Positions 7,846 to 62,104 of a stretch of 64,000 bases of DNA are shown in pieces. A program made the position numbers and the translations under genes. The stretch is from Macrostomum lignano. Its lineage: Eukaryota. The stretch spans positions 62,001-126,000 of the forward strand of contig NIVC01002838.1 of NCBI GenBank assembly GCA_002269645.1, read 5' to 3'. Numbering within the stretch: the first letter of the stretch is position 1; every line of letters starts with the position of its first letter. The notes beneath the pieces are model-generated. The model saw only the letters and a program-made list of their open reading frames with translations, was not told the DNA's origin and ran no database searches.

Positions 7846-8169
7846 CTGCGGTTTTGCATGGGTTTGGCATGGGTTGTGAGACTGGTTTGGCATGGGTTGT
7901 GCGTGGGCTATGAGACTGGTTTGCCATGGGCTGTGAGACTGGTTTGCCATGGGTTGTGCATGGGTTGTGAGACTGGTTTGGCATGGGTTGTGAGACTTTC
8001 GTGGAATGAAGCAGTTTCAACTAAAACATTAAAACTTATTAAAGGTTTATCTAAATATAAGAAAAAAGATTACTATATTAACACTAAATTAAGCAACTAA
8101 TTTATTAAGTTTTGGGCTACTTTTTGCTGCAAAAAACTAATTCGCGGGTAGCGAAGCAAAATTACGCAC

Positions 8170-9034
8170 CGCTCATCGGGAAGCTTTTCTCCTCGTGAAT
8201 GAAGATGCGCAATCCAGCGGACTGCGGCTCGTTGCTCTGCAGCAACCGGTTGACGGCTTTGCTGCGTAAGAACTTGCGAGTGATGCAGCCGTCGGGCAGT
8301 GCTCCATTTGGGTAAATTTCATACAAGTCGGGATACTTCTCGTTGCTATCGGTGAAGAGCACCATGTCCAGCTCGGCTCCCCTGCCCCCAGGACCGCTGG
8401 ACGACTGCCGTGGGTCCGGGTGGAACGTGTAGCAGTTCCAGAACCGGCTGGTCTGGACAAGCGAGAAGTTCTTGTGACTGCACGGCTCGCTGTTGTAGCG
8501 GCAGCTCAGCAGCATGGTCTCGTCGAGCTGGGAGATGTCTCTGGTGTCGCCCGATACCCACATCACGTCCAGGACCTTCTTGCACACCTTCTCAAGTCGG
8601 TTATCATAGCTTTCATCCGATTCTTGCGGGCGCTTCTGGGTGTCCTCCTTGAACCAGTTGTCGAAGTTGCCCCAGAAGATTTCAAAGTAGTCAAACACCT
8701 CAAACTTAAACTCATTCTTAGAGTGGAATTCAAGGAAATTTATAATAGACAGCAGAGATGCAGAAGCGGGCTTGAAGTTGCAAATTGTGACGTCGGGAAA
8801 CTGGGCTCGTTCGCTCCTCAGCTTCAGCTGCGACTCAACGGAGCGCTCGGTGAATTTCTGCACCAACTTGGCCAAGTGGACGCTGCAGCCGATCAGGGCA
8901 GCTACGAACAGAAGCAGCCAGAAGAGCCGTCGAGCTGAGCCTCTGGACAGGAAGATGTGCAGCAAGCCGTGGGTTCTCGTGATGCCAGCCACCTCCTGGG
9001 CGGCACCGGTCACCGTGCGGAGTCGGGCTCGCAT
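8170..9034 (-). CDS. DEG/ENaC (ASIC/FaNaC-like) channel exon 1 (HG motif, TM1, extracellular domain)
   Basis: ITRTHGLLHI (HG gating motif), hydrophobic TM1, FPDVTICN, SCRYNSEPC, NCYTF, AGLRIFIH. Donor AGCG|gtgcgt. Spliced product is about 610 aa. Confidence 0.93.
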
Positions 9035-14389: not shown

Positions 14390-15640
14390 GACAGTCTCTC
14401 TGTCGACTACTATGTCTACCTCTCTATCTACCTGTCTTTCTACCTCTTTATCTACCTGTCTGTCTACCTCTCTATCTACCTGTCTTTCGACCTCTCTATC
14501 AACCTGTCTGTCTACCTATCTATCTACCTGTCTGTCTACCTCTCTATCTACCTGTCTGTCTACCTCTCTATCTACCTGTCTGTCTACCTCTCTATCTACC
14601 TGTCTGTCTACCTCTCTATCTACCTGTCTGTCTACCTCTCTATCTACCTGTCTGTCTACCTATCTATCTACCTGTCTGTCTACCTATCTATCTACCTGTC
14701 TGTCTACCTCTCTATCTACCTGTCCGTCTACCTCTCTATCTACCTGTCTGTCTACCTATCTATCTACCTGTCTGTCTACCTCTCTATCTACCTGTCTGTC
14801 TACCTCTCTATCTACCTGTCTGTCAACCTCTCTATCTACCTGTCTGTCTACCTCTCTATCTACCTGTCTGTCTACCTCTCTATCTACCTGTCTGTCTACC
14901 TCTCTATCTACCTGTCTGTCTACCTCTCTATCTACCTGTCTGTCTACCTCTCTATCTACCTGTCTGTCTACCTCTCTATCTACCTGTCTGTCTACCTCTT
15001 TATCTACCTGTCTGTCTACCTCTCTATCTACCTGTCTGTCTACCTATCTATCTACCTGTCTGTTTAATTTTCTATCCACCTGTCTGTCTACCTCTCTATC
15101 TACCTGTCTGTCTACCTCTCTATCTACCTGTCTGTCTACCTCTCTATCTACCTGTCTGTCTACCTCTCTATCTACCTGTCTGTCTACCTATCTATCTACC
15201 TGTCTGTCTACCTCTTTATCTACCTGTCTGTCTACCTCTTTATCTACCTGTCTGTCTACCTCTCTATCTACCTGTCTGTTTAATTTTCTATCCACCTGTC
15301 TGTCTACCTCTCTATCAACCTGCCTGTCTACCTATCTATCTACCTGTCTGTCTACCTCTCTATCTACCTGTCTGTCTACCTCTCTATCTACCTGTCTGTC
15401 TACCTCTCTATCTACCTGCCTTCTACCTCTCTATCTACCTGTCTGTCTACCTCTCTATCTACCTGTCTGTCTACCTCTCTATCTACCTGTCTGTCTACTT
15501 CTCTATCTACCTGTCTTTCGACCTCTCTATCTACCTGTCTTTCGACCTCTCCATCTATCCATCTCTATCTATCTATCTACCCGTCTGTCTATCTCTCTAT
15601 CTACCAATTTTTGACTGCTCTATCTACCTAACTGCCTGAC
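14390..15640 (+). repeat. Minisatellite, 24-bp unit TCTACCTCTCTATCTACCTGTCTG
   Basis: About 50 copies. Source of the (STSLSTCL)n and (LPLYLPVC)n ORFs. Confidence 0.97.
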
Positions 15641-16269
15641 TGTCTACCCTAAAAATTAAGGTGGAAGTCTGGCCGTGCACAGTGCGTGCAGTATCGAAGC
15701 AGCATGACAAGTATCAAAAAGTTGCAAAACGGAAGCACAGGAAACGAGAGTACACACGGGTAGATGAGGTGTCGAAAAGTCGAAGCTTTTAGCAGAATGA
15801 CTGTTTTATTGTGTCGTTTTTATGATTCTTGGTCCTTCCCCCTCTTCTCCCAGAATTTGCATCGCAAGCATCCCCACCACTGCGCCAGTGGCTTCATCTG
15901 CAGTTTAATATCCCGATTTCATATACTTCAGCTCTCTCCCCAGCTTTCTTGTTCCTTCCTTCCTCCCATCCCAACCGGGAGATTTGGTTGGGAAAATTTC
16001 TGCTAAATGCAGATCCAGCGCGAGGGAACAATGAGAGAATTGAGGAGGCTTGCAGTTTCGTTGGGTCTGGGGGGGGGGAGAATTCAGAGTTCGCCTCATC
16101 AGTCCGATAGGACGCAGGTTGTGACAAATGCTAAGCCTAGAGCAGACCGCACATAGTTCTCCCGCCTTTAATCTGGCTCGATCGATTGAGTAGACTGACG
16201 CGTGACTTTGGAGCATGAATCTTTTATTTAAAGTAAAAAAATTGCTTAAATATAAAGACTGAGTAGGGT

Positions 16270-17585
16270 GAGTATCAGGTGAGGATTAGGGTGAGGATTA
16301 AGTGAAGATTAGGTGAGGATTAAGGTGATGATTAGGTGAGGATTAGAGTGAGGATTAAGTGAAGATTAGGTGAGGATTAAAGTGAGAATTAGGTGAGGAT
16401 TAGAGTGAGGATTAGGTAAAGATTAGTTGAGGATTAAAGTGAGAATTAGGTGAGGATTAAGTGAGGATTAGGTGAGGATTAAGGTGAGGATTAGGGTGAG
16501 GATTAAGTGAGGATTAGGTGAGGATTAAGGTGAGGATTAGGGTGAGGATTAAGTGAAGATTAGGTGAGGATTAAGGTGATGATTAGGTGAGGATTAGAGT
16601 GAGGATTAGGTAAAGATTAGGTGAGGATTAAAGTGAGGATTAGGTGAGGATTAAGTGAGGATTAGGTGAGGATTAAGGTGAGGATTAGGGTAAGGATTAA
16701 TTGAGGATTAGGTGAGGATTAGGTGAGGATTAAGGTGAGGATTAGGTGAGGATTAGGTGAGGATTAGGTGAGGATTAAGATGAGGATTAGGTGAGGATTA
16801 GAGTGAGGATTATGTAAAGATTAGGTGAGGATTAGGTGAGGATTAGGTAAGGATTAAGTGAGGATTAGGTAAAGATTAGGTGAGGATTAGGTGAGGATTA
16901 GGTGAGGATTAGAGTGAGGATTAGGTAAAGATTAGGTGAGGATTAAGGTGAGGATTAGGTGAGGATTAGGTGAGGATTAGGTGAGGATTAAGGTGAGGAT
17001 TAGGTGAGGATTAGGTGAGGATTAGAGTGAGGATTATGTAAAGATTAGGTGAGGATTAGGTGAGGATTAGGTAAGGATTAAGTGAGGATTAGGTAAAGAT
17101 TAGGTGAGGATTAGGTGAGGATTAGGTGAGGATTAGAGTGAGGATTAGGTAAAGATTAGGTGAGGATTAAGGTGAGGATTAGGTGAGGATTAGGTGAGGA
17201 TTAGGTGAGGATTAAGGTGAGGATTAGGTGAGGATTAGGTGAGGATTAATGTGAGGATTAGGGTAAGGATTAGGTGAGGATTAAGATGAGGATTAGGTGA
17301 GGATTAGAGTGAGGATTAGGTAAAGATTAGGTGAGGATTAGGTGAGGATTAGGTGAGGATTAGAGTGAGGATTAGGTAAAGATTAGGTGAGGATTAGGTG
17401 AGGATTAGGTGAGGATTAAGATGAGGATTAGGTGAGGATTAGAGTGAGGATTAGGTAAAGATTAGGTGAGGATTAGGGTGAGGATTAGGGTGTGGATTAG
17501 GGTGAGGATTAGGGTGAGGATTAGAGAGGGGATTAGGTGAGGATTAGGGTGAAGATTAGAGAGGGGATTAGGTGAAAACTAGGTG
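16270..17585 (+). repeat. Minisatellite, ~11-bp unit TTAGGTGAGGA
   Basis: About 115-120 G-rich copies with 11-12 bp variants, upstream of the tubulin. Confidence 0.97.
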
Positions 17586-17845
17586 AGCTTTAAATTGCTG
17601 ATTGATTTTTAATGCTGCCACTCGCACAATCAGCTCAGGACTTGAGTAAAGCTAAAAGCTTAGAGATAGTTCTCCCTCTTTATTAACAGTTTCAAAAGTT
17701 TTGTCTGTGGCACTAATTGAACCCTAATGCGGTTAAAAAGCTGCTGCATAATTTGAGAGGAATGTTAGTTGCTCTGTCAGTCAACAGTTGCTAACCGCTG
17801 TCTCAATTGCTTGTAGGAATCTCAGGTCATCTCGAAGCGACACTA

Positions 17846-17860
17846 ATGGCGTCCTCTCAT
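17846..17860 (+). CDS. Divergent alpha-type tubulin exon 1 (MASSH), predicted
   Basis: ATGGCGTCCTCTCAT|gtaagc, phase 0, followed by an 87-nt intron to tctgcag|CCG. Translation could instead start at Met 17960. Confidence 0.6.
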
Positions 17861-17947
17861 GTAAGCCGGTAGTTCTTTAGTATTAAAACTGTTATAGTTT
17901 CATTCTCATGCTATGACGATTCCCTCATAACCCCGTATCCTCTGCAG

Positions 17948-18164
17948 CCGAAATCCCTAATGACGGTGCAAGTTGGTCAAGCTGGGATACAAATTGGACA
18001 TGCGGTGTGGGAGCTGTTCTGTCTGGAGCACAACATATCGGCAGATGGCACCCCGAAACTGCACTGTGGCGATCTCGGCAATGTGGAATCAGTGTTTGTG
18101 CCCACACCGAAGGGGCGCTACTTTCCCAGGAGCCTGTTTGTGGACACAGACCCCGCTTGCGTTG
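17948..18164 (+). CDS. Divergent alpha-type tubulin exon 2
   Basis: PKSLMTVQVGQAGIQIGHAVWELFCLEHNI...GRYFPRSLFVDTDPACV matches the alpha-tubulin N-terminus ([32 protein letters not shown]). Donor G|gtgaga, phase 1. Confidence 0.93.
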
Positions 18165-18169
18165 GTGAG

Positions 18170-18785
18170 AGGAGATGGGGTCTCAGGGTGAGAGTAGATA
18201 GGGTCTGAGGGTGATGATAGTAGATAGGGTCTGAGGGTGAGAGTAGATAGGGTCTGAGGGTGAGAGTAGATAGGGTCTGAGGGTGAGAGTAGATAGGGTC
18301 TGAGGGTGAGAGTAGATAGGGTCTGAGGGTGAGAGTAGATAGGGTCTGAGCGTGAGAGTAGATAGGGTCTGAGGGTGAGAGTAGATAAGGTCTGAGGGTG
18401 AGAGTAGATAGGGTCTGAGGGTGAGAGTAGATAGGGTCTGAGGGTGAGAGTAGATAAGGTCTGAGCGTGAGAGTAGATAGGTCTGAGGGTGAGAGTAGAT
18501 ACTAGATAGGGTCTGAGGGTGAGAGTAGATAGGGTCTGAGCGTGAGAGTAGATAGGGTCTGAGGGTGAGAGTAGATAAGGTCTGAGGGTGAGAGTAGATA
18601 GGGTCTGAGGGTGAGAGTAGATAGGGTCTGAGGGTGAGAGTAGATAAGGTCTGAGCGTGAGAGTAGATAGGTCTGAGGGTGAGAGTAGATACTAGATAGG
18701 GTCTGAGGGTGAGTAGATAGGGTCTGAGGGTGAGAGTAGATAGGGTCTGAGGATGAGAGTAGATAGGGTCTGAGGGTGAGAGTAC
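18170..18785 (+). repeat. Intronic minisatellite, 23-bp unit GGGTCTGAGGGTGAGAGTAGATA
   Basis: About 26 copies starting right after the tubulin exon 2 donor, with an ~180-bp higher-order duplication. Confidence 0.97.
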
Positions 18786-18917
18786 AATGGTTGAGTCCCT
18801 GGTAAGAGAAATAGGCTAAACGGTTCTCCGTAAATCATGAAGCAGGTAAATCCCAGCCAGGAAGTTCATAGCAAACTTTAATCGCAAAAAGTTCACCCGC
18901 CCTGAAACCGCCACCAG

Positions 18918-20583
18918 ACGAGATGCGCTCAGGACCCTACAAGCAGCTGTTCAGCTCCCGGCAGCTGCTCTCAGACCAGGTGGACGCGGCCAGCAACTAC
19001 ACAACTGGTCGCTATGGTTACGCCAAGCGGCTGGTGCCGGACACGCTCGAACGACTGCGCTGGATGACTGAGAAGGCGGACTCGAAGCCGACGCTCTGTC
19101 TGGTGCACAGCGCCTGCGGCGGCACCGGCAGCGGCTTCGCCGTGGCCTGCCTCGCCAGGATGGCCGACGAACTGGGCATCGAGCCGCAGAACATCATCGA
19201 TCTGTGCGTTGTGCCCGGCGTCTCCGCTGGCCAGAGCTCCTGCGAGCTGCTCAACACCGCCCTGTACCTGGACGAGTCGCAGGATCTGACCAGGCAGACC
19301 GTCTGCGTCTCCAACTCGGCGATGTTCCGCCTGTGCAACTCGCAGCTGCAGTCGCAGGGGGCGGCCACCTTCGCACACGCCAACCGCGCCCTGGCAGCCG
19401 CCTTCAGCAACCTCACCGCCACGGAGCGCCTGCCCGGCTCCAGCGTCGGCCTGTCCGGCATCCTGGACAGCCTGCTGCCGTTCCGTCACCTGCGCTACAC
19501 CCTGCTAGCCTGCGCTCCTTTCCTCACCGCCGAGAGCGCTAGGACGGAGCGTCCAACCGCCAAGTCCGCCACCGCGGCCGTGTTGGAGCTGTCCAGCCAG
19601 TTCCTCGACGTTGACCTCCGTCAGGGTCGCCACGCTGCCGGCTTCCTGTTGTACCGCGGCGACGCCAGTCTGGGCGAGGCGCAGAAGCTGGCGGCGGAGC
19701 TGACTTCCCGAGGCCGAGTGCAGTTCCAGGACTGGGCGCCTACCGGCTTCCGCACCGGCGTTGTGACGCCTCCGCCAGTTGCTCCGCCTGGCAGCGGCTT
19801 CGCAGACGTCCCGATTTCCGCGACGCTGCTTGCCAGCCACTCTGGCATCTCCGACATCTTCGCCAAGCTGGCCGCGAGTTCTAGGAAGCTGCAAGACCGC
19901 GACATGTTCGTGCACAACTACGAGGGCGCGATTGTGTCTCTGCTGAACAAAACGGTGGAGGGGAGCAACGCGGGGATGAATTTAGGGGCAGGCGGACCGG
20001 GGACCAACACGGACTCGGACTCGCAGAAACCGACCAGCCTGGACTCGGCTTCGGCCGATAACAACAGCGTGCGAATGTGGATGAACCCGCCGGCGGCTCA
20101 GGCTGCGCTGGCTTCGGGCGGTGGTCGTGGTGAGCTGCAGAACTACCGGCGCAGGCGACTGACGTCCAGAGAGCCCGGAAGCCACGCCACCCAGAAGCCG
20201 CAGCAGCAGCAGCAAGAACAGCAGCAAGACGAGGAGGAGCCTCAGGTGTCGCGTACCTGCGCACTAAGCGACGTCTTCGGCGTTCGAGTCCGCCTATCAT
20301 CGGCCATCGACTACCTGCAGCGTGTGTCGATCAGCTACGCCGCCGACAGTCAAACCGACGCAGGTGACGCCGCCGATGTCGATGCTGCCGCAGTTGGCGA
20401 CGACAATGACGTCATCGAGGCGACTAACGGCGAGGAGGACGGCAAGGAGGACGAGGAGGAGACGGAGGGCGCCGACGAGAAGGATGGAGAGGAGGGCGAG
20501 CAGCGAGTGGATAACAAGCTGCACGTGACCATCAATGATGTCGGCGGGATCGGCAGAGATCTGGAAAATGTCGACTCCAATCG
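18918..20583 (+). CDS. Divergent alpha-type tubulin exon 3 (GTPase and C-terminal domains, insertion, acidic tail)
   Basis: Acceptor ccaccag|AC gives DEMRSGPYKQLF. Also DAASNYTTG, HSACGGTGSG, LLYRGD, QFQDWAPTGF, FVHNY. Ends at donor AATCG|gtaaga, so the TAA used by the ORF track is intronic. Confidence 0.92.
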
Positions 20584-20698
20584 GTAAGAGGTCGTGGGCA
20601 CCCCATGGCGCAATGCCTTTCGGCGAAATCGGTCCCGCAACCACCTCTGAGGCCAGATGCATTTACATGTAGCTTCTTACTCTGATACAAAAACACAG

Positions 20699-21029
20699 GT
20701 CCGTTAGCGGCCAGTCTGCCCAGTCTGACTCAAAGCAACAACAGCAACAAGCGGACGGGAACTCAGTCAGCGCAGAAGAGGAGCCGCAGGTTGAACCATC
20801 TCAGCAAAGCGAGCAGGCGGATCTCTCAGCCAGCAAAGACCCCAACGATCCTCCGGCGAACAACGCCAACCAGCAGGGCGAGTTGCCTGTCCCAAGCAGT
20901 CGTTGGTGTCTCCGACGTCGCAGCAAGTCTCGCCGACCAGGCGAAGCCGCCGCCACCGCCGCCGCTGCCGCCGCCGCTGCAGCAGCCGCAGGAAAACACC
21001 CGCAATCGCTGAAGCCGAGAAAATTCTGA
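20699..21029 (+). CDS. Divergent tubulin exon 4 (Q/A-rich tail with basic tip), predicted
   Basis: Acceptor aaacacag|G, phase 2, matches the donor. It has 109 open codons (SVSGQSAQSDSKQQQQQ...RWCLRRRSKSRRPGEAAATAAAAAAAAAAAGKHPQSLKPRKF*) with exon-like GC content. Confidence 0.75.
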
Positions 21030-21334
21030 TGAAGTACCAACGAAGTCTGGGCGGCCAATGACGCGATCACGTCGTGTTGGCGTTTTAAACTAACGAATTG
21101 TTAATTTCTGGTCAAAAAAATTAATGCAAAAACTAATATGACTTTTGTCTAATGGTTTTTAGTTTCGCCCAGACTGACCGAACGCAGCTATATTGCGCTG
21201 CCAACAAAGAAAATATATGAACAGCTGATACATTTCTTTGAAAGCGTTTGAGAATTTGAAATAGTTCAATTTTGTTGCTTTAGAAATTTGCCACATTCTT
21301 CGCCGTTCAAGTTATCATCTCCACTGATCCCACT

Positions 21335-22000
21335 GCATCTCTGCCCACCTCACCCTATATCTGCTCACATCACTTGACCTCTGCTCACCTCATCTCACCT
21401 CTGCTCACCTCACCTCACCTCTGCCCACCTCACTTCATATCTGCTCACCTCACTTCACATCTGCTCACCTCACTTCACATCTGCTCACCTCACTTCACCT
21501 CTGCTCACCTCACTTCACATCTGCTCACCTCACTTCACATCTGCTCACCTCACTTCACATCTGCTCACCTCACTTCACATCTGCTCACCTCACCTCACCT
21601 CTGCCCACCTCACTTCATATCTGCTCACCTCACTTCATATCTGCTCACCTCACTTCACATCTGCTCACCTCACTTCACATCTGCTCACCTCACTTCACAT
21701 CTGCTCACCTCACCTCACCTCTGCTCACCTCACCTCTGCTCACCTCATCTCACCTCTGCTCACCTCACCTCATATCTGCTCACCTCACTTCACATCTGCT
21801 CACCTCACCTCACCTCACCTCATCTCACTTCACATCTGCTCACCTCACTTCACAGCTGCTCACCTCACCTCACCTCACCTCATCTCACCTCTTCTCACCT
21901 CACTTCACCTCTGCTCACCTCACCTCACCTCTTCTCACCTCACCTCTTCTAACCTCACCTCACATCTTCCCACCTCACTTCAGACTTGCTCACCTTGCCT
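21335..22000 (+). repeat. Minisatellite, 20-bp unit CTGCTCACCTCACTTCACAT
   Basis: About 30 copies between the convergent tubulin and PDE1 3' ends. Confidence 0.95.
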
Positions 22001-22629
22001 CTCTACTCGCATCTACTAACCTCGCTTCACATCTTTACTCACATCTCTACTCTGTGCTCATCTCACATAGTCTCTATTTTATCTTACTATTTATCTCACT
22101 ATTTATCTCCCTGACAGGGTTGCAGCTCATTAAACCAAGTTAACCATATCCAAGTTAGAAGTTTAACAATGCTCTTAATTAACGATAACTCATAAGAAAC
22201 CAAATATATAAAGTTTATATTTATATTTTTATTCAGCTCTCGTCAATAAATAAAAACAACGAAAAAAGGAAACACGAAAAATCTACGTTAAAAAGTTAAT
22301 TGAACAGGTATTTAAGAGGGAACAAGTTTGAGGGCATACACAGTTTAAAATAGCCATATAATAAATTTGGAGGCCCTGAAAAGTTTAATTAGTTCAAAAT
22401 GTACTTTAATTTAGTTTTAAACATTTTATTATTTGAAGCATGCCGCATCAGGAGCTGCGTCGATCTCATTTCGAAAAGCAAACAGAGGCAAAGGAAAAAA
22501 GACAGTGAGCAAACGAAATGTGTCATCATTATTCAAACGGGAACCAACGATTGAATGCAGAGAAAACAAGCTGCATCTTGCATTTGTGACCGAATTGGGG
22601 CTGCTTAAGTTTAATCGAGCTTAACCGGG

Positions 22630-22965
22630 AGCCAATGTACACTGAGGGGTGGTGGGGCAGGGGTTGAGTGAGGGCCAGTGTACACTGAGTGGTGGTGGGG
22701 CAGGGGTCGAGAGAGACCCAGTGTACACTGAGGAGTGGATGGGCAGGGGTTGAGAGAGAGCCAGTGTACACTGAGGAGTGGATGGGCAGGGGTTGAGAGA
22801 GAGCCAGTGTACACTGAGGAGTGGATGGACAGGGGTTGAGAGAGAGCCAGTGTACACTGAGGGGTGGATGGGCAGGGGTTGAGAGAGAGCCAGTGTGCAC
22901 TGAGGGGTGGTAGGGCAGGGGTTGAGAGGGAAAGAGAGCCAGTGTAAACTTGAGGGATTGGTGGG
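22630..22965 (+). repeat. Minisatellite, ~41-bp unit GAGAGAGAGCCAGTGTACACTGAGGAGTGGATGGGCAGGGGTT
   Basis: About 8 copies. Confidence 0.92.
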
Positions 22966-29180: not shown

Positions 29181-29266
29181 CAGTATACTGTTAGACAAGA
29201 TCCCTAATCCGTCAAACTATAAGTACGCTCGTAGATGAAGCTCAAGCCTTCCAAGCAGCCTCTCAC

Positions 29267-29493
29267 TTGTACTCCTCTCTAGACAGGCCGCTGATGATGT
29301 TGAACTCGTCCAGCTTCATGAGCCTGAAGACGGCGCTGGCGTGGTGATTCTCCAGCACGCCTTTGTCATTGTACAGCAGGGCGAGCTCTGAGGCGGTGTT
29401 CACGTGAAAGTTATTGGTGGTTCCCGTGTGCTCGTAGTCGTGAATGATGGCGGCGAAAATGGTAGCGAAGATCTCCAGGTCTGTCAGCCAGTT
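29267..29493 (-). CDS. PDE1: PDE1 catalytic exon (HD metal-binding motif)
   Basis: NWLTDLEIFATIFAAIIHDYEHTGTTNNFHVNTASELALLYNDKGVLENHH, the class I PDE signature in its PDE1-type form. Confidence 0.96.
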
Positions 29494-29789
29494 CTGTTGG
29501 ATCAAAGTGAGTTTTTGTGGTAATTAATGTCAGATTTTTTAGTTTACAGCGCCACACTAATATATTTATAGGTTTTTAGCGTATGAATAAATGTGACAAG
29601 CTGGTTATCAAACTGATCACAAGGACAAAAAGTTTTCTGCTAAAGATGTTAAACAATAGGTCAATCTGAATGATTTCTTTGTCAAATGAATTTAAGACTG
29701 CTGTCCTGATGGTTGAACAAATTTTCAAATTTTAACAATCAATTATTGTTGGTATAGACTAACGAACGAGAATTTGACGAAAGAGATGA

Positions 29790-45329: not shown

Positions 45330-48300
45330 GAGAGGGAGATGGCAGGAGGGAGAGGAGAGAGATGGCAGCAGAGAGAGGAGAGAGATGGCAGCAGAGAGAG
45401 GAGAGAGATGGCAGCAGAGAGAGGAGAGAGATGGCAGCAAAGAGAGGAGAGAGATGGCAGCAGAGAGAGGAGAGAGATGGCAGCAGAGAGAGGAGAGAGA
45501 TGGCAGCAGAGAGAGGAGAGAGATGGCAGTGAGAGGAGAGAGATGGCAGCAGAGAGAGGAGAGAGATGGCAGCAGAGAGAGGAGAGAGATGGCAGCAGAG
45601 AGAGGAGAGAGATGGCAGCAGAGAGAGGAGAGAGATGGCAGCAGAGAGAGGAGAGAGATGGCAGCAGAGAGAGGTGAGAGATGGCAGCAGAGAGAGGAGA
45701 GAGATGGCAGCAGAGAGAGGAGAGAGATGGCAGTGAGAGGAGAGAGATGGCAGCAGAGAGAGGAGAGAGATGGCAGTGAGAGGTGAGAGATGGCAGCAGA
45801 GAGAGGAGAGAGATGGCAGCAGAGAGAGGAGAGAGATGGCAGCAGAGAGAGGAGAGAGATGGCAGCAGAGAGAGGAGAGAGATGGCAGCAGAGAGAGGAG
45901 AGAGATGGCAGCAGAGAGAGGAGAGAGATGGCAGTGAGAGGAGAGAGATGGCAGCAGAGAGAGGAGAGAGATGGCAGTGAGAGGTGAGAGATGGCAGCAG
46001 AGAGAGGAGAGAGATGGCAGCAGAGAGAGGAGAGAGATGGCAGCAGAGAGAGGAGAGAGATGGCAGCAGAGAGAGGAGAGAGATGGCAGCAGAGAGAGGA
46101 GAGAGATGGCAGTGAGAGGTGAGAGATGGCAGCAGAGAGAGGAGAGAGATGGCAGCAGAGAGAGGAGAGAGATGGCAGCAGAGAGAGGAGAGAGATGGCA
46201 GCAGAGAGAGGAGAGAGATGGCAGCAGAGAGAGGAGAGAGATGGCAGCAGAGAGAGGAGAGAGATGGCAGTGAGAGGAGAGAGATGGCAGCAGAGAGAGG
46301 AGAGAGATGGCAGTGAGAGGTGAGAGATGGCAGCAGAGAGAGGAGAGAGATGGCAGTGAGAGGAGAGAGATGGCAGCAGAGAGAGGAGAGAGATGGCAGT
46401 GAGAGGTGAGAGATGGCAGCAGAGAGAGGAGAGAGATGGCAGCAGAGAGAGGAGAGAGATGGCAGTGAGAGGAGAGAGATGGCAGCAGAGAGGAGAGAGA
46501 TTGTAGCAGAGAGAGGAGAGAGATGGCAGCAGAGAGAGGAGAGAGATGGCAGTGAGAGGAGAGAGATGGCAGCAGAGAGAGGAGAGAGATGGCAGCAGAG
46601 AGAGGAGAGAGATGGCAGTGAGAGGTGAGAGATGGCAGCAGAGAGAGGAGAGAGATGGCAGCAGAGAGAGGAGAGAGATGGCAGTGAGAGGAGAGAGATG
46701 GCAGCAGAGAGGAGAGAGATGGCAGCAGAGAGAGGAGAGAGATGGCAGCAGAGAGAGGAGAGAGATGGCAGCAGAGAGAGGAGAGAGATGGCAGCAGAGA
46801 GAGGAGAGAGATGGCAGTGAGAGGTGAGAGATGGCAGCAGAGAGAGGAGAGAGATGGCAGTGAGAGGAGAGAGATGGCAGCAGAGAGAGGAGAGAGATGG
46901 CAGCAGAGAGAGGAGAGAGATGGCAGTGAGAGGAGAGAGATGGCAGCAGAGAGAGGAGAGAGATGGCAGTGAGAGGTGAGAGATGGCAGCAGAGAGAGGA
47001 GAGAGATGGCAGCAGAGAGAGGAGAGAGATGGCAGTGAGAGGTGAGAGATGGCAGCAGAGAGAGGAGAGAGATGGCAGCAGAGAGAGGAGAGAGATGGCA
47101 GTGAGAGGAGAGAGATGGCAGCAGAGAGGAGAGAGATGGCAGCAGAGAGAGGAGAGAGATGGTAGCAGAGAGAGGAGAGAGATGGCAGCAGAGAGAGGAG
47201 AGAGATGGCAGCAGAGAGAGGAGAGAGATGGCAGCAGAGAGAGGAGAAAGATGGCAGCAGAGAGAGGAGAGAGATGGCAGTGAGAGGAGAGAGATGGCAG
47301 CAGAGAGAGGAGAGAGATTGTAGCAGAGAGAGGAGAGAGATGGCAGCAGAGAGAGGAGAGAGATGGCAGTGAGAGGAGAGAGATGGCAGCAGAGAGAGGA
47401 GAGAGATGGCAGTGAGAGGAGAGAGATGGCAGCAGAGAGAGGAGAGAGATGGCAGTGAGAGGTGAGAGATGGCAGCAGAGAGAGGAGAGAGATGGCAGCA
47501 GAGAGAGGAGAGAGATGGCAGTGAGAGGAGAGAGATGGCAGCAGAGAGGAGAGAGATGGTAGCAGAGAGAGGAGAGAGATGGCAGCAGAGAGAGGAGAGA
47601 GATGGCAGCAGAGAGAGGAGAGAGATGGCAGCAGAGAGAGGAGAGAGATGGCAGTGAGAGGAGAGAGATGGCAGCAGAGAGGAGAGAGATGGTAGCAGAG
47701 AGAGGAGAGAGATGGCAGCAGAGAGAGGAGAGAGATGGCAGCAGAGAGAGGAGAGAGATGGCAGCAGAGAGAGGAGAGAGATGGCAGCAGAGAGAGGAGA
47801 GAGATGGCAGCAGAGAGAGGAGAGAGATGGCAGCAGAGAGAGGAGAGAGATGGCAGCAGAGAGAGGAGAGAGATGGCAGCAGAGAGAGGAGAGAGATGGC
47901 AGCAGAGAGAGGAGAGAGATGGCAGTGAGAGGTGAGAGATGGCAGCAGAGAGAGGAGAGAGATGGCAGTGAGAGGAGAGAGATGGCAGCAGAGAGAGGAG
48001 AGAGATGGCAGCAGAGAGAGGAGAGAGATGGCAGTGAGAGGAGAGAGATGGCAGCAGAGAGAGGAGAGAGATGGCAGTGAGAGGTGAGAGATGGCAGCAG
48101 AGAGAGGAGAGAGATGGCAGTGAGAGGAGAGAGATGGCAGCAGAGAGAGGAGAGAGATGGCAGTGAGAGGTGAGAGATGGCAGCAGAGAGAGGAGAGAGA
48201 TGGCAGCAGAGAGAGGAGAGAGATGGCAGTGAGAGGAGAGAGATGGCAGCAGAGAGGAGAGAGATTGTAGCAGAGAGAGGAGAGAGATGGCAGCAGAGAG

Positions 48301-48745
48301 AGGAGAGAGATGGCAGCAGAGAGAGGAGAGAGATGGCAGCAGAGAGAGGAGAGAGATGGCAGCAGAGAGAGGAGAGAGATGGCAGCAGAGAGAGGAGAGA
48401 GATGGCAGAAGGGAGAGGAGAGAGATGGCAGCAGAGAGAGGAGAGAGATGGCAGCAGAGAGAGGAGAGAGGTGGCAGAAGGGAGAGGAGAGAGATGGCAG
48501 CAGAGAGAGGAGAGAGATGGCAGAAGGGAGAGGAGAGAGATGGCAGCAGAGAGAGGAGAGAGATGGCAGAAGGGAGAGGAGAGAGATGGCAGCAGAGAGA
48601 GGAGAGAGATAGCAGCAGAGAGAGGAGAGAGATGGCAGCAGAGAGAGGAGAGAGATGGCAGAAGGGAGAGGAGAGAGATGGCAGCAGAGAGAGGAGAGAG
48701 ATGGCAGCAGAGAGAGGAGAGAGATGGCAGAGAGAGAAGAGATGA
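45330..48745 (+). repeat. Large minisatellite, 23-bp unit GAGAGATGGCAGCAGAGAGAGGA
   Basis: About 3.4 kb, about 150 copies with recurring shorter variants. Explains the 1200-aa minus-strand ORFs. Confidence 0.98.
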
Positions 48746-49099: not shown

Positions 49100-49880
49100 A
49101 GTGACGCGTGGAGAGAAAGGGGGGCGAAGAGAGGGCGGAGGGCGGAGAGAGGGCGGATATGGGTGGAGGATTTCCGGAGAAAGGGGCGGAGAGAGGGGGC
49201 GGCGGAGAGAGGGGCGGAGAGAGGACGGAGAGAGGGGCGGGGAGAGGGCGGAGAGAGGGGCGGAGAGAGGGCGGAGGAAGAGGGCGGAGAGAGGGTCGGA
49301 GAGAGATGGGTGGAGAGAGAGGCGGAGAGAGGGGCGGAAAGAGGGGCGGAAAGAGGGGCGGAAAGAGGGGCGGAGAGAGGGGCGGAGAGAGAGGCGGAAA
49401 GAGGGGCGAAGAGAGGGGCGGAGAGGGGGGCGGAGAGAGGGGCGGAGAGAGATGGGCGGAGAGAGGGGCGGAGAAAGGGGCCGAGAGAGGGGCGGAGAGA
49501 GAAGCGGAGAGAGATGGGCGGAGAGAGAGGCGGAGAGAGGGGCGGAGAGAGGGGCGGAGAGGGGGGCGGAGAGAGGGGCGGAGAGAGATGGGCGGAGAGA
49601 GGGGCGGAGAAAGGGGCCGAGAGAGGGGCGGAGAGAGAAGCGGAGAGAGATGGGCGGAGAGAGAGGCGGAGAGAGGGGCGGAGAGAGAGTCGGAGAGAGG
49701 GGCGGAAAGAGGGGCGGAGAGAGGGGCGGAGAGAGGGGGCGGCGGAGAGAGAGGCGGAGTGAGGGGCGGAGAGAGGGGCGGAGAGAGGGGCGGAGAGAGG
49801 GGCGGAGAGAGAAGCGGAGAGAGGGGCGGAGAGAGGGGCGGAGAGAGGGGGTGGAGAGAGGGGGCAGCGGAGAGAGAGGC
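49100..49880 (+). repeat. 12-bp repeat (GAGAGGGGCGGA)n
   Basis: About 60 imperfect copies, most containing GGGCGG or GGCGG. Confidence 0.95.
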
Positions 49881-50799: not shown

Positions 50800-52085
50800 G
50801 AGTAGACTTCAGTAGAGTAGAGTGGTGTAAAGTAGAGCAGAGGGCAGTAGAGTAGAGAGTAGAGGGCAGTAGACTAAAGAGTAGAGGGCAGTAGACTAGA
50901 GAGTAGAGGGCAGTAGACTAGAGAGTAGAGGGCAGTAGACTAGAGAGTAGAGGGCAGTAGAGAGTAGAGGGCAGTAGAGTAGAGAGTAGAGGGCTGTAGA
51001 GAGTAGAGGGCAGTAGAGAGTAGAGGGCAGTAGAGAGTAGAGGGCAGTAGAGTAGAGAGTAGAGGGCAGTAGACTAGAGAGTAGAGGGCAGTAGAGAGTA
51101 GAGGGCAGTAGAGTAGAGAGTAGAGGGCAGTAGAGAGTAGAGGGCAGTGGAGAGTAGAGGGCAGTAGACTAGAGAGTAGAGGGCAGTAGACTAGAGAGTA
51201 GAGGGCAGTAGAGAGTAGAGGGCAGTAGAGTAGAGAGAAGAGGGCAGTAGACTAGAGAGTAGAGGGCAGTAGACTAGAGAGTAGAGGGCAGTAGACTAGA
51301 GAGTAGAGGGCAGTAGACTAGAGAGTAGAGGGCAGTAGAGAGTAGAGGGCAGTAGAGAGTAGAGGGCAGTAGACTAGAGAGTAGAGGGCAGTAGACTAGA
51401 GAGTAGAGGGCAGTAGAGAGTAGAGGGCAGTAGAGAGTAGAGGGCAGTAGACAGTAGACTAGAGTAGAGGGCAGTAGAGTAAAGAGTAGAGGGCAGTAGA
51501 CTAGAGAGAAGAGGGCAGTAGACTAGAGAGTAGAGGGCAGTAGACTAGAGAGTAGAGGGCAGTAGACTAGAGAGTAGAGGGCAGTAGACTAGAGAGTAGA
51601 GGGCAGTAGAGAGTAGAGGGCAGTAGACTAGAGAGTAGAGGGCAGTAGACTAGAGAGTAGAGGGCAGTAGAGTAAAGAGTAGAGGGCAGTAGACTAGAGA
51701 GAAGAGGGCAGTAGACTAGAGAGTAGAGGGCAGTAGACTAGAGAGTAGAGGGCAGTAGACTAGAGAGTAGAGGGCAGTAGACTAGAGAGTAGAGGGCAGT
51801 AGAGAGTAGAGGGCAGTAGACTAGAGAGTAGAGGGCAGTAGACTAGAGAGTAGAGGGCAGTAGAGAGTAGAGGGCAGTAGACTAGAGAGTAGAGGGCAGT
51901 AGACTAGAGAGTAGAAGGCAGTAGAGTAGAGAGTAGAGGGCAGTAGACTAGAGAGAAGAGGGCAGTAGACTAGAGAGTAGAGGGCAGTAGAGTAGAGAGT
52001 AGAGGGCAGTAAACTAGAGAGAAGAGGGCAGTAGACTAGAGAGTAGAGGGCTGTAGAGAGTAGAGGACAGTAGAGAGTAGAATAG
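50800..52085 (+). repeat. Minisatellite, 22/15-bp units (GAGAGTAGAGGGCAGTAGACTA)
   Basis: About 60 copies. Confidence 0.96.
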
Positions 52086-61500: not shown

Positions 61501-62104
61501 GAGAAAGAGCGAGCGAAGCGAGCTCTTTCGAGCTTGCTTGCCGCAGCCAATCAAGCTGAATGCACGCACACAAGATCACCGGTCACAAGATTATCACAAG
61601 ATTAAGACGCACACAAGATTATCCGATAGATAGATAGATAGATGGATAGATAGATAGATGGATAGATAGATAGATTGATAGGTAAATACACAGATAGATC
61701 CTTAAGCAGTGGATCTTATCAGTTAATTTAATTTCATTACAAACGTAATAAACTTACAGTAATTAGCTAGGCGTTGCTTTGATTCACTGATCCGATGTGC
61801 TTTAAATTATTTAGCAGAAATCTAAATTTTGTTAAATTAGTTTGACACAGTGCTGCAGTTTATTTTTTAAAACTTCTATAGGAAAAGTGAATGCCCGTTT
61901 TAAGCCAAATAAATATTTAATCCGATCTTGGTTACTGTCTTGCGGTTTCCAACGAGGTCAGTTGCGGGTTCTGAATTTGTATTTTCTGAGTTCACGAGAC
62001 TAAAGGCGTCAAAGTTAAGTAGAATGAGTCGTTGGGTTCTGTTCAGACTGAGATGGTGAAAGGCAGACAAGAAACTTAATGCTAAACAGGATTGGCTGTT
62101 AAAC

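Follow-up and report, generated by a model that had tools for sequence, protein, structure and literature searches.

A lineage-restricted alpha-like tubulin without the catalytic T7-loop residues D251 and E254 in the flatworm Macrostomum lignano

Four residues of alpha-tubulin, R2, D251, E254 and K352, complete the E-site of beta-tubulin (PMC10319017), in which E254 and D251 act in the hydrolysis of guanosine triphosphate (GTP) and R2 and K352 lie alongside them (PMC10319017, PMC7018511, PMC8764682). When E254 or D251 is mutated by design, GTP stays in the lattice and the microtubules are very stable (PMC7018511, PMC8764682, PMC11893814, PMC10319017). Diverged tubulins also occur naturally: the alpha- and beta-like tubulins of ciliates (ALT and BLT of Tetrahymena, and those of Paramecium) are lineage-specific, do without the canonical tail-modification motifs and presumably function in specialised arrays of microtubules (PMC1557398, PMC4202323). 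Here we analyse a 64,000-nucleotide (nt) stretch of the genome of the free-living flatworm Macrostomum lignano (positions 62,001 to 126,000, forward strand, of contig NIVC01002838.1), hereafter the window, and within it the gene BOX15_Mlig033756g2. We find that this gene, Mlig033756 for short, encodes an alpha-derived tubulin that has lost both D251 and E254, and we compare it throughout with a second M. lignano protein, its paralogue Mlig018576.

In the first-pass annotation, made from the letters of the window, the equivalents of D251 and E254 were both read as Gly in a loop one residue shorter than that of alpha-tubulin. The HMMER/phmmer alignment to solved alpha-tubulins (E = 1.8e-70) agrees, placing 'rlpgs.svglsgildsllp' opposite 'rfdgalnvdlnefqtnlvp', and the motif exchanges reported alongside (CGGTGSG for GGGTGSG, CELLN for VEPYN and ASNYTTG for ANNYARG) are all present in the sequence. 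The diagnostic elements of the tubulin core are as follows.

18989..19009 (+): T3 motif, ASNYTTG (canonical ANNYARG), with Ser at N101
19115..19135 (+): T4 signature, CGGTGSG, with Cys at G142 and G143-G148 intact
19235..19255 (+): T5/H5 motif, SSCELLN (canonical AVVEPYN), with E183 and N186 kept; QSTCELVN in the paralogue
19307..19327 (+): T6/H6 motif, VSNSAMF (canonical VDNEAIY), with N206 kept; VTNSAMF in the paralogue
19427..19480 (+): T7 loop and H8, RLPGS-SVGLSGILDSLLP, with D251 and E254 both changed to Gly, N249 and N258 both to Ser, and a one-residue deletion
19769..19813 (+): S9-S10 loop with the alpha-specific 8-residue insertion (PPPVAPPGSGFADVP); the FRTG upstream holds the K352 equivalent, here Arg

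Both of alpha-tubulin's catalytic T7/H8 residues, D251 and E254, are absent from the Mlig033756 protein; the two positions read Gly/Gly, against Asn/Asn in Mlig018576. Judged from its sequence, the protein is unable to supply the catalytic acidic pair. The basic residues of the E-site are kept, R2 as K7 and K352 as Arg in Mlig033756, and as Arg and Lys, respectively, in Mlig018576. Among the best database matches, about 24 of about 130 alpha-type proteins with an alignable T7 loop, a sample skewed toward diverged sequences, likewise have neither D251 nor E254, and degeneration of T7 is therefore a recurrent event among diverged alpha-like tubulins. With such company, the earlier description of the locus as the strongest candidate for an undescribed system was too strong: what stands in the window is a single annotated, uncharacterised, lineage-specific paralogue.

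We compared the protein with alpha-tubulin element by element, in canonical alpha numbering, recording identity both to alpha and between the two M. lignano paralogues. In the nucleotide pocket, GQAG, Q11, Q15, D69, D98-A100, S140, G143-G148, E183, N206 and N228 are identical to alpha, and two further residues differ only conservatively, E71 being Asp and Y224 being Phe. The gamma-phosphate contact N101 is unconserved (Ser in Mlig033756, Phe in Mlig018576); its change to Ser was graded conservative in one listing and not conserved in the element comparison. Nearly all the residues that hold alpha's structural GTP thus appear to be retained. The segments that are both alpha-like and conserved between the paralogues are T1/H1 (GQAG...WEL.CLEH, 75-85% identity to alpha), T4 (GGTGSG), S8 (LLYRGD) and the H10-S9 segment (VQF.DWAP). 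Others are un-alpha-like yet common to both paralogues, namely T5/H5 (QS[ST]CEL[LV]N), T6/H6 (V[ST]NSAMF.LC.S.L) and H7 (ATFAH.NR.LA..FSNLT..ER.PG).

The Mlig033756 protein is a tubulin in fold and an alpha-tubulin by descent. Both Pfam domains are recognised (Tubulin, PF00091, 2.8e-32; Tubulin_C, PF03953, 1.3e-15), and in a phmmer search of all PDB chains the best 60 matches were all alpha-tubulins, with a top E of 1.8e-70 (for example 6e88_A, 5mjs_E and 3j8x_A). With the core (residues 1-410 of the first gene model) as BLASTP query, canonical alpha-tubulins scored 213-229 bits at 31-35% identity, beta-tubulins 143-161 bits at 26-29% and human gamma-tubulin TUBG1, whose sequence is identical to PDB 7qj0_U, 122 bits at 24%. 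What we take to be the human epsilon sequence, unverified and with no PDB entry, gave 95 bits at 23%, a rough yardstick only. An identity of 31-35% to alpha is below that between alpha and beta (42-44%) and equal to that between alpha and gamma (31%). The alpha-type insertion between S9 and S10 is present in both paralogues; VVTPPPVAPPGSGFADVPISA has the length of its 21-residue alpha counterpart, where beta sequences have an 8-residue gap. In a neighbour-joining tree of 410 columns aligned by hidden Markov model, with 200 bootstraps, Mlig033756 and Mlig018576 paired in 200/200, and the pair fell inside the alpha/alpha-like clade, with beta and gamma outside, also in 200/200. The top 50 Foldseek matches were microtubule or tubulin-complex entries (chain type unstated in the output) at 29-32% identity, as for alpha, and template-modelling (TM) scores of 0.83-0.86, with a root-mean-square deviation of about 2.9 Å over about 408 columns in the shorter alignments and up to 11.8 Å in longer ones. 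The best BLAST, HMMER and Foldseek matches, the S9-S10 insertion and the tree all bear out the alpha-type assignment of the first-pass annotation. The same tree excludes, at 200/200, a grouping with gamma, one of the characterised classes to which such changes might have assigned the protein. Since two defining features of alpha-tubulin are missing, the acidic pair of T7/H8 and the canonical termini, we file the protein as an alpha-like, alpha-derived variant and not as a bona fide alpha-tubulin.

The derived motifs are narrowly distributed. A profile of the Mlig033756 and paralogue proteins was scored against 1.84 billion representative proteins, and the best 150 were inspected; besides the two M. 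lignano proteins, all were alpha, alpha-like or beta by motif inspection. Among the matches listed, only one other protein has the derived motifs, Mlig018576 (PAA47215.1 and related), at 47% identity. The next profile matches are canonical alpha-tubulins, often in fused gene models, and a word-indexed search agrees. Neither search found the derived motifs outside M. lignano, a result that is inconclusive given the uncertain coverage of other Macrostomum transcriptomes. The two paralogues resemble each other in QS[ST]CEL[LV]N, V[ST]NSAMF, ATFAH.NR and ER.PG, in the loss of D251 and E254 (Asn/Asn in Mlig018576), in extra sequence past H11 and in a long tail with a basic patch. An intron after ...C[VI]|DE... 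is apparently common to both, as read from a boundary between high-scoring segment pairs (residues 120/121) and not from a gene model. They differ in that Mlig018576 has GGGTGSG intact, R2 and K352 kept as Arg and Lys, one extra intron and a tail without detectable homology to that of Mlig033756. Its frame is intact, and two copies compared over three large exons have identical exons (1614 nt) in a region that is about 96% identical including introns.

Other diverged alpha-like proteins of flatworms come from M. lignano itself (Mlig020438), Taenia asiatica, Mesocestoides corti, Opisthorchis felineus, Paragonimus species, Calicophoron daubneyi and Echinostoma caproni. They are 36-44% identical to alpha and, like Mlig033756, alpha-derived; many carry C-terminal extensions of 200-650 amino acids (aa), and they are its nearest neighbours in the tree. 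Unlike it, they keep VEPYN in T5 and DNEA in T6, have a contiguous H11'-H12 where this can be checked and in most cases retain E254 or have Asp there; no derived motif is held in common. The sister of the M. lignano pair varied among bootstraps (Opisthorchis 55/200, Mlig020438 46/200, Taenia 39/200), and long-branch attraction is possible.

From 17700 to 21300 the window matches contig NIVC01002838.1 (assembly GCA_002269645.1) at 100% identity. The four-exon gene BOX15_Mlig033756g2 occupies 17846-21029 (+) of the window. The spliced coding sequence, 17846-17860 + 17948-18164 + 18918-20583 + 20699-21029, translates residue for residue into PAA54932.1, a protein of 742 aa with the database label "hypothetical protein". 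The gene is organised as follows.

17846..17860 (+): exon 1, start codon and MASSH, in the place of the canonical MREC; GT donor at 17861
17948..18164 (+): exon 2, encoding S1, the T1 loop and H1 (GQAGIQIGHAVWELFCLEH), the H1-S2 loop and S2/T2 (FVDTDP); K7 aligns with alpha R2
18165..18917 (+): intron 2, nearly the whole of it about 26 copies of a 23-nt tandem repeat starting at the 5' splice site
18918..20583 (+): exon 3, encoding the remaining tubulin core (H2 to H11), a low-complexity insertion and an acidic tail
20699..21029 (+): exon 4, encoding a Q/S/E-rich tail, the basic patch RWCLRRRSKSRRPG (20901-20942), an Ala run and the stop codon

The first-pass annotation had placed the tubulin at 18918-19935 in a frame intact over 1.66 kb. 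Its start is the acceptor of the large exon, and the open reading frame (ORF) at 18923-20587 (+) is indeed uninterrupted over 554 codons (1.66 kb). The span covers only part of the gene, however, and leaves out the N-terminal 77 residues (S1, the GQAG-bearing T1/H1, the H1-S2 loop and S2), which lie in the upstream exons. Exact-sequence look-ups of the unspliced 554-aa ORF and of a gene-model protein returned no record, and no second tubulin-like sequence was found elsewhere in the 64-kb window. The repeat unit of intron 2 is GGTGAGAGTAGATAGGGTCTGAG; because the repeat begins exactly at the 5' splice site, each unit carries a donor-like GGTGAG.

The C-terminal part of the protein departs from canonical tubulin. 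Its segments, in order, are these.

19904..19927 (+): end of H11 (MFVHNYEG), beyond which nothing is clearly tubulin-like
19928..20260 (+): low-complexity segment of about 110 aa at the expected place of H11'-H12, with a weak helix in the AlphaFold2 model (residues 415-430)
20261..20338 (+): possible H12-like helix, tentative, ALSDVFGVRVRLSSAIDYLQRVSISY; AlphaFold2 helix at residues 537-554 with low predicted local distance difference test (pLDDT) score; MAFFT pairs DY with canonical DYEEV
20339..20583 (+): long acidic D/E-rich tail instead of the short canonical C-terminal tail (E-hook); disordered, pLDDT <40

After FVHNYEG, the canonical 26-residue stretch is unrecognisable, and about 340 aa of low complexity stand in place of the H11'-H12 segment and acidic tail. 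The N-terminus is MASSHPKSLM, with no MREC, and there is no short acidic tail ending in Tyr. In canonical tubulins the MREC N-terminus serves autoregulation and the C-terminal Tyr serves the tyrosination cycle. The tail runs from an acidic part through a Q/S-rich part and the basic patch RWCLRRRSKSRRPG to an Ala run. By phmmer it has no detectable similarity to the tail of the paralogue or to other flatworm alpha-like tails, and the idea of a conserved C-terminal domain was dropped for want of that homology; in a MAFFT alignment only the short basic patch looks alike in the tails of both paralogues. A clean insertion between H11' and H12 was also given up, since MAFFT splits canonical H12 over two candidate helices, and in the modelled protein the position of H12 is ambiguous. 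In Mlig018576 a clearer H12-like string (EASDHLEGLAQVY) lies about 35 residues past H11. The AlphaFold2 model of Mlig033756 has pLDDT mostly of 70-90 in the core and below 40 in the tail.

The surfaces expected to meet other subunits are diverged as well. Identity to alpha and between the paralogues, respectively, is 26% and 15% in the H1-S2 loop, 36% and 36% in the M-loop, 22% and 22% in H8, 6% and 19% in H10 and 15% and 10% in H11, and T7 is 25% identical between the paralogues. H4, S5 and the lateral element H3 are likewise un-alpha-like, and none of them is conserved in the other paralogue.

Mlig033756 is present in three genomic copies, g1, g2 (the copy in the window) and g3. By the method of Nei and Gojobori, the window copy and g3 differ over the whole coding sequence by 24 synonymous and 8 non-synonymous changes, a ratio of non-synonymous to synonymous rates (dN/dS) of 0.106 (binomial p = 3e-9), and over the tubulin core by 17 and 3, with dN/dS 0.058 (binomial p = 4e-8). 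The three differences between the window copy and g1 are all synonymous. Non-synonymous sites also evolve more slowly than introns and untranslated regions (UTRs; p = 0.01). All three copies hold an intact frame of >740 codons with conserved GT-AG splicing, and exon 3 has no insertion or deletion among them; the introns vary, intron 2 measuring 753, 563 and 476 nt. In residues 416-520, 5/5 differences between copies are synonymous, which indicates that the low-complexity segment is translated and is not an unrecognised intron. A dN/dS of about 0.06-0.11 means that Mlig033756 is not a pseudogene, and the substitution pattern indicates purifying selection. A dN/dS near 1, which together with lack of expression would have told against the first-pass reading, is excluded by the values between genomic copies, and the gene model comes from a transcript-based annotation. 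That annotation, Mlig_3_7, is a genome-guided transcriptome assembly (PMC5730564), so the gene model implies assembled transcripts.

One difference among the copies alters the end of the protein. At 20997-21002 the window copy reads CACCCG where g1 has CACCCCG, and the 1-nt shorter C run shifts the frame, so that QSLKPRKF stands where the final 19 residues (AIAEAEKILMKYQRSLGGQ, predicted to be helical) would be. The protein accordingly ends in ...PRKF in g2 and in ...SLGGQ otherwise, the reading frame of the other genomic copies extending to 21057-21059 in window-equivalent coordinates. The shorter C run may be genuine allelic variation or may stem from a homopolymer error in the long reads.

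A 749-aa phosphodiesterase gene lies on the opposite strand downstream of the tubulin gene in 3/3 genomic copies, so the duplication was larger than the tubulin gene. In the window it is seen at 29263-29505 (-), where an exon has a match to PF00233, 3'5'-cyclic nucleotide phosphodiesterase, at E = 2e-29. On the upstream side of the tubulin gene lies a DEG/ENaC channel gene, represented by an exon-sized ORF of the amiloride-sensitive sodium channel family at 8162-9034 (-; PF00858, E = 6e-31). Satellite-like arrays flank the gene at 14413-15605 (24-nt unit, 50 copies), 16267-17587 (11-nt unit GGTGAGGATTA, 116 copies), 21340-21995 (20-nt unit, 33 copies) and 22629-22928 (43-nt unit, 7 copies). 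Further away, very large purine-rich tandem arrays at 45332-48742 (23-nt unit, 153 copies), 49175-49863 (12-nt unit, 56 copies) and 50834-52000 (22-nt unit, 56 copies) explain both the spurious minus-strand ORFs of 1200 aa and the extreme skew in GC and AT content found at 46-50 kb. An apicomplexan origin, which the repeats and the contrasts in GC had suggested, was rejected by the homology search, which pointed to M. lignano.

We propose, at a probability of roughly 55%, that Mlig033756 is a lineage-restricted diverged alpha paralogue that serves as a terminal subunit for capping or seeding, as a subunit outside the lattice or as a regulator that binds tubulin. GTP would be bound as a permanent structural cofactor, as in alpha-tubulin, and a tubulin-type partner would probably still be docked via the nucleotide face, where the T5, H5, H6 and H7 motifs are conserved between the paralogues. 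The T7/H8 face, if it touches a GTP-bearing subunit, would not trigger hydrolysis. The protein would act at protofilament ends or outside the lattice, and would less likely be a bulk microtubule building block: because the lateral elements, H8, H10 and H11 are unconserved and H11'-H12 is disrupted and followed by a tail of about 340 aa, we rank a terminal or non-lattice role above bulk co-polymerisation.

Several points weigh against this proposal. The partner, GTP binding and localisation are all predicted from sequence. The replacement of N101 by Ser, and by Phe in Mlig018576, might weaken GTP binding, and T5, part of the expected beta-docking face, is only 18% alpha-like, which makes pairing with canonical beta-tubulin uncertain. 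Sequence elements were assigned to interfaces from textbook tubulin structure and not from analysed coordinates, and AlphaFold2 confidence is only moderate for the intermediate domain and drops to low values after residue 404. Synonymous divergence between g2 and g3 (0.046) is about three times that of non-repeat introns and UTRs (13/850 nt), so that dN/dS somewhat overstates constraint; relative to introns, dN is about 0.2-0.35. The excess is probably due to the many transitions, third-position T/C or CpG, among the synonymous changes in the GC-rich exons. Finally, no expression table for Mlig033756 or Mlig018576 was found in the full text and supplements of Macrostomum papers, an absence that is uninformative.

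The same evidence bears differently on other explanations. A doubtful one, the first option of the first-pass annotation, is that the protein replaces alpha beside ordinary beta as a bulk lattice subunit, giving GTP-locked hyperstable microtubules, for example in the sperm cortex. Its alpha ancestry and retained N-site pocket fit this, as does the keeping of the basic R2/K352 contacts while the acidic pair is gone, and engineered E254A/N alpha polymerises into hydrolysis-deficient stable microtubules (PMC7018511, PMC8764682, PMC11893814). Set against these are lateral and longitudinal elements that are poorly alpha-like and unconserved between the paralogues, a T5 replaced by a family-specific motif, and the disrupted H11'-H12 surface with its tail of about 340 aa; the element comparison speaks against the protein being simply an alpha-tubulin with an inactive T7 loop that sits in an ordinary lattice. 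A bolder reading, which we consider rather unlikely, is that Mlig033756 and Mlig018576 found a new flatworm-restricted class, a GTPase-dead, alpha-derived subunit that ends or seeds protofilaments or locks GTP at chosen places in the lattice; if this were true, such a subunit would build permanently stable arrays (for example in aflagellate sperm) without microtubule-associated proteins. Unlikely, too, is a pseudo-GTPase that has lost nucleotide binding as well and has become a structural or regulatory tubulin-fold protein unrelated to polymers. The unconserved N101 (Ser/Phe), the changes of G142 to Cys and E71 to Asp and the long, disordered, non-homologous tails would suit it, and very diverged Paramecium tubulins without the P-loop are a precedent (PMC4202323); yet T1 (GQAG), T4 (GGTGSG), S140, E183, N206 and N228 are the best-conserved parts in both paralogues, the pattern expected if selection preserves nucleotide binding.

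That the gene is a decaying duplicate, an incipient pseudogene or an annotation artefact, we regard as very improbable. Extreme divergence from alpha-tubulin, the 1-nt frameshift over the last 19 codons of the window copy and the failure to find an expression table would speak for it, but they are outweighed by dN/dS of 0.06-0.11 with p below 1e-7, three intact copies of >740 codons with conserved GT-AG splicing, an old 47% paralogue that is also intact and the transcript-derived annotation. Least credible of all is that the protein belongs to a different known class, be it gamma, delta, epsilon or zeta, whose members usually do without these residues. The T7/H8 string R-x-P-G ... L-x-G-[IL]-x-x-S-L-x-P is slightly gamma-like, gamma itself has Gly at E254 (human TUBG1), and the 31-35% identity to alpha is as low as that between alpha and gamma; we treat the string as a lead, not as evidence of relationship. 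Apart from the two M. lignano proteins, motif inspection assigned the matches listed, out of 1.84 billion representatives, to alpha, alpha-like or beta tubulins, and gamma membership is ruled out by the lowest score of the three verified classes (122 bits, 24% identity), by the alpha-specific S9-S10 insertion and by the tree, which places the protein with alpha in 200/200.

Public databases already contain Mlig033756, though the gene has neither a name nor a study devoted to it, and a literature search found no publication on it or its family. The searchable tubulin literature yielded no account of diverged alpha-like tubulins of flatworms, and flatworms are absent from the main text of a broad classification of tubulins published in 2014. 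This phylum has several independent and strongly diverged alpha-like tubulins that lie outside searchable published classifications. The significance of Mlig033756 is limited by a family known from one species, by a function that is inferred and by the frequency of alpha-like tubulins with a degenerate T7 in databases. Still, the role of E254 and D251 is known almost wholly from engineered mutants, and here the two residues have been removed naturally while most of the pocket's residues are kept and the gene stays under purifying selection. Such a gene could show how cells use a hydrolysis-incompetent tubulin, to stabilise, cap, seed or sequester. RNA interference, in situ hybridisation and transgenesis are established in M. 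lignano (PMC5730564), which makes the question directly testable.

Set beside the described systems, Mlig033756 shares with canonical alpha-tubulin (for example TUBA1B) the fold, the two Pfam domains, the S9-S10 insertion, most residues of the N-site pocket and the R2 and K352 equivalents; it differs in being only 31-35% identical, with T5, T6, H8, H10, H11, H3 and the M-loop un-alpha-like. The engineered alpha mutants of yeast and human (E254A, E254N, E254D and D251A), of which those at E254 are the nearest functional analogues, have the same catalytic positions neutralised, but are otherwise wild-type and polymerise normally, whereas in Mlig033756 the polymerisation surface has diverged too and the change is natural, fixed and common to two old paralogues. 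The closest natural parallels are the uncharacterised alpha-like tubulins of ciliates and of other flatworms. With ALT and BLT of ciliates it has in common that they are lineage-specific diverged paralogues, although theirs is an independent origin in another phylum. Gamma-tubulin, a minus-end subunit, does not activate hydrolysis in the subunit below. Mlig033756 resembles it in the Gly at the alpha E254 position and in the R-x-P-G ... S-L-x-P of T7/H8, and is distinguished from it by the alpha-type length of the S9-S10 insertion, which gamma does not have, by 24% identity (122 bits) and by a separation in the tree in 200/200.

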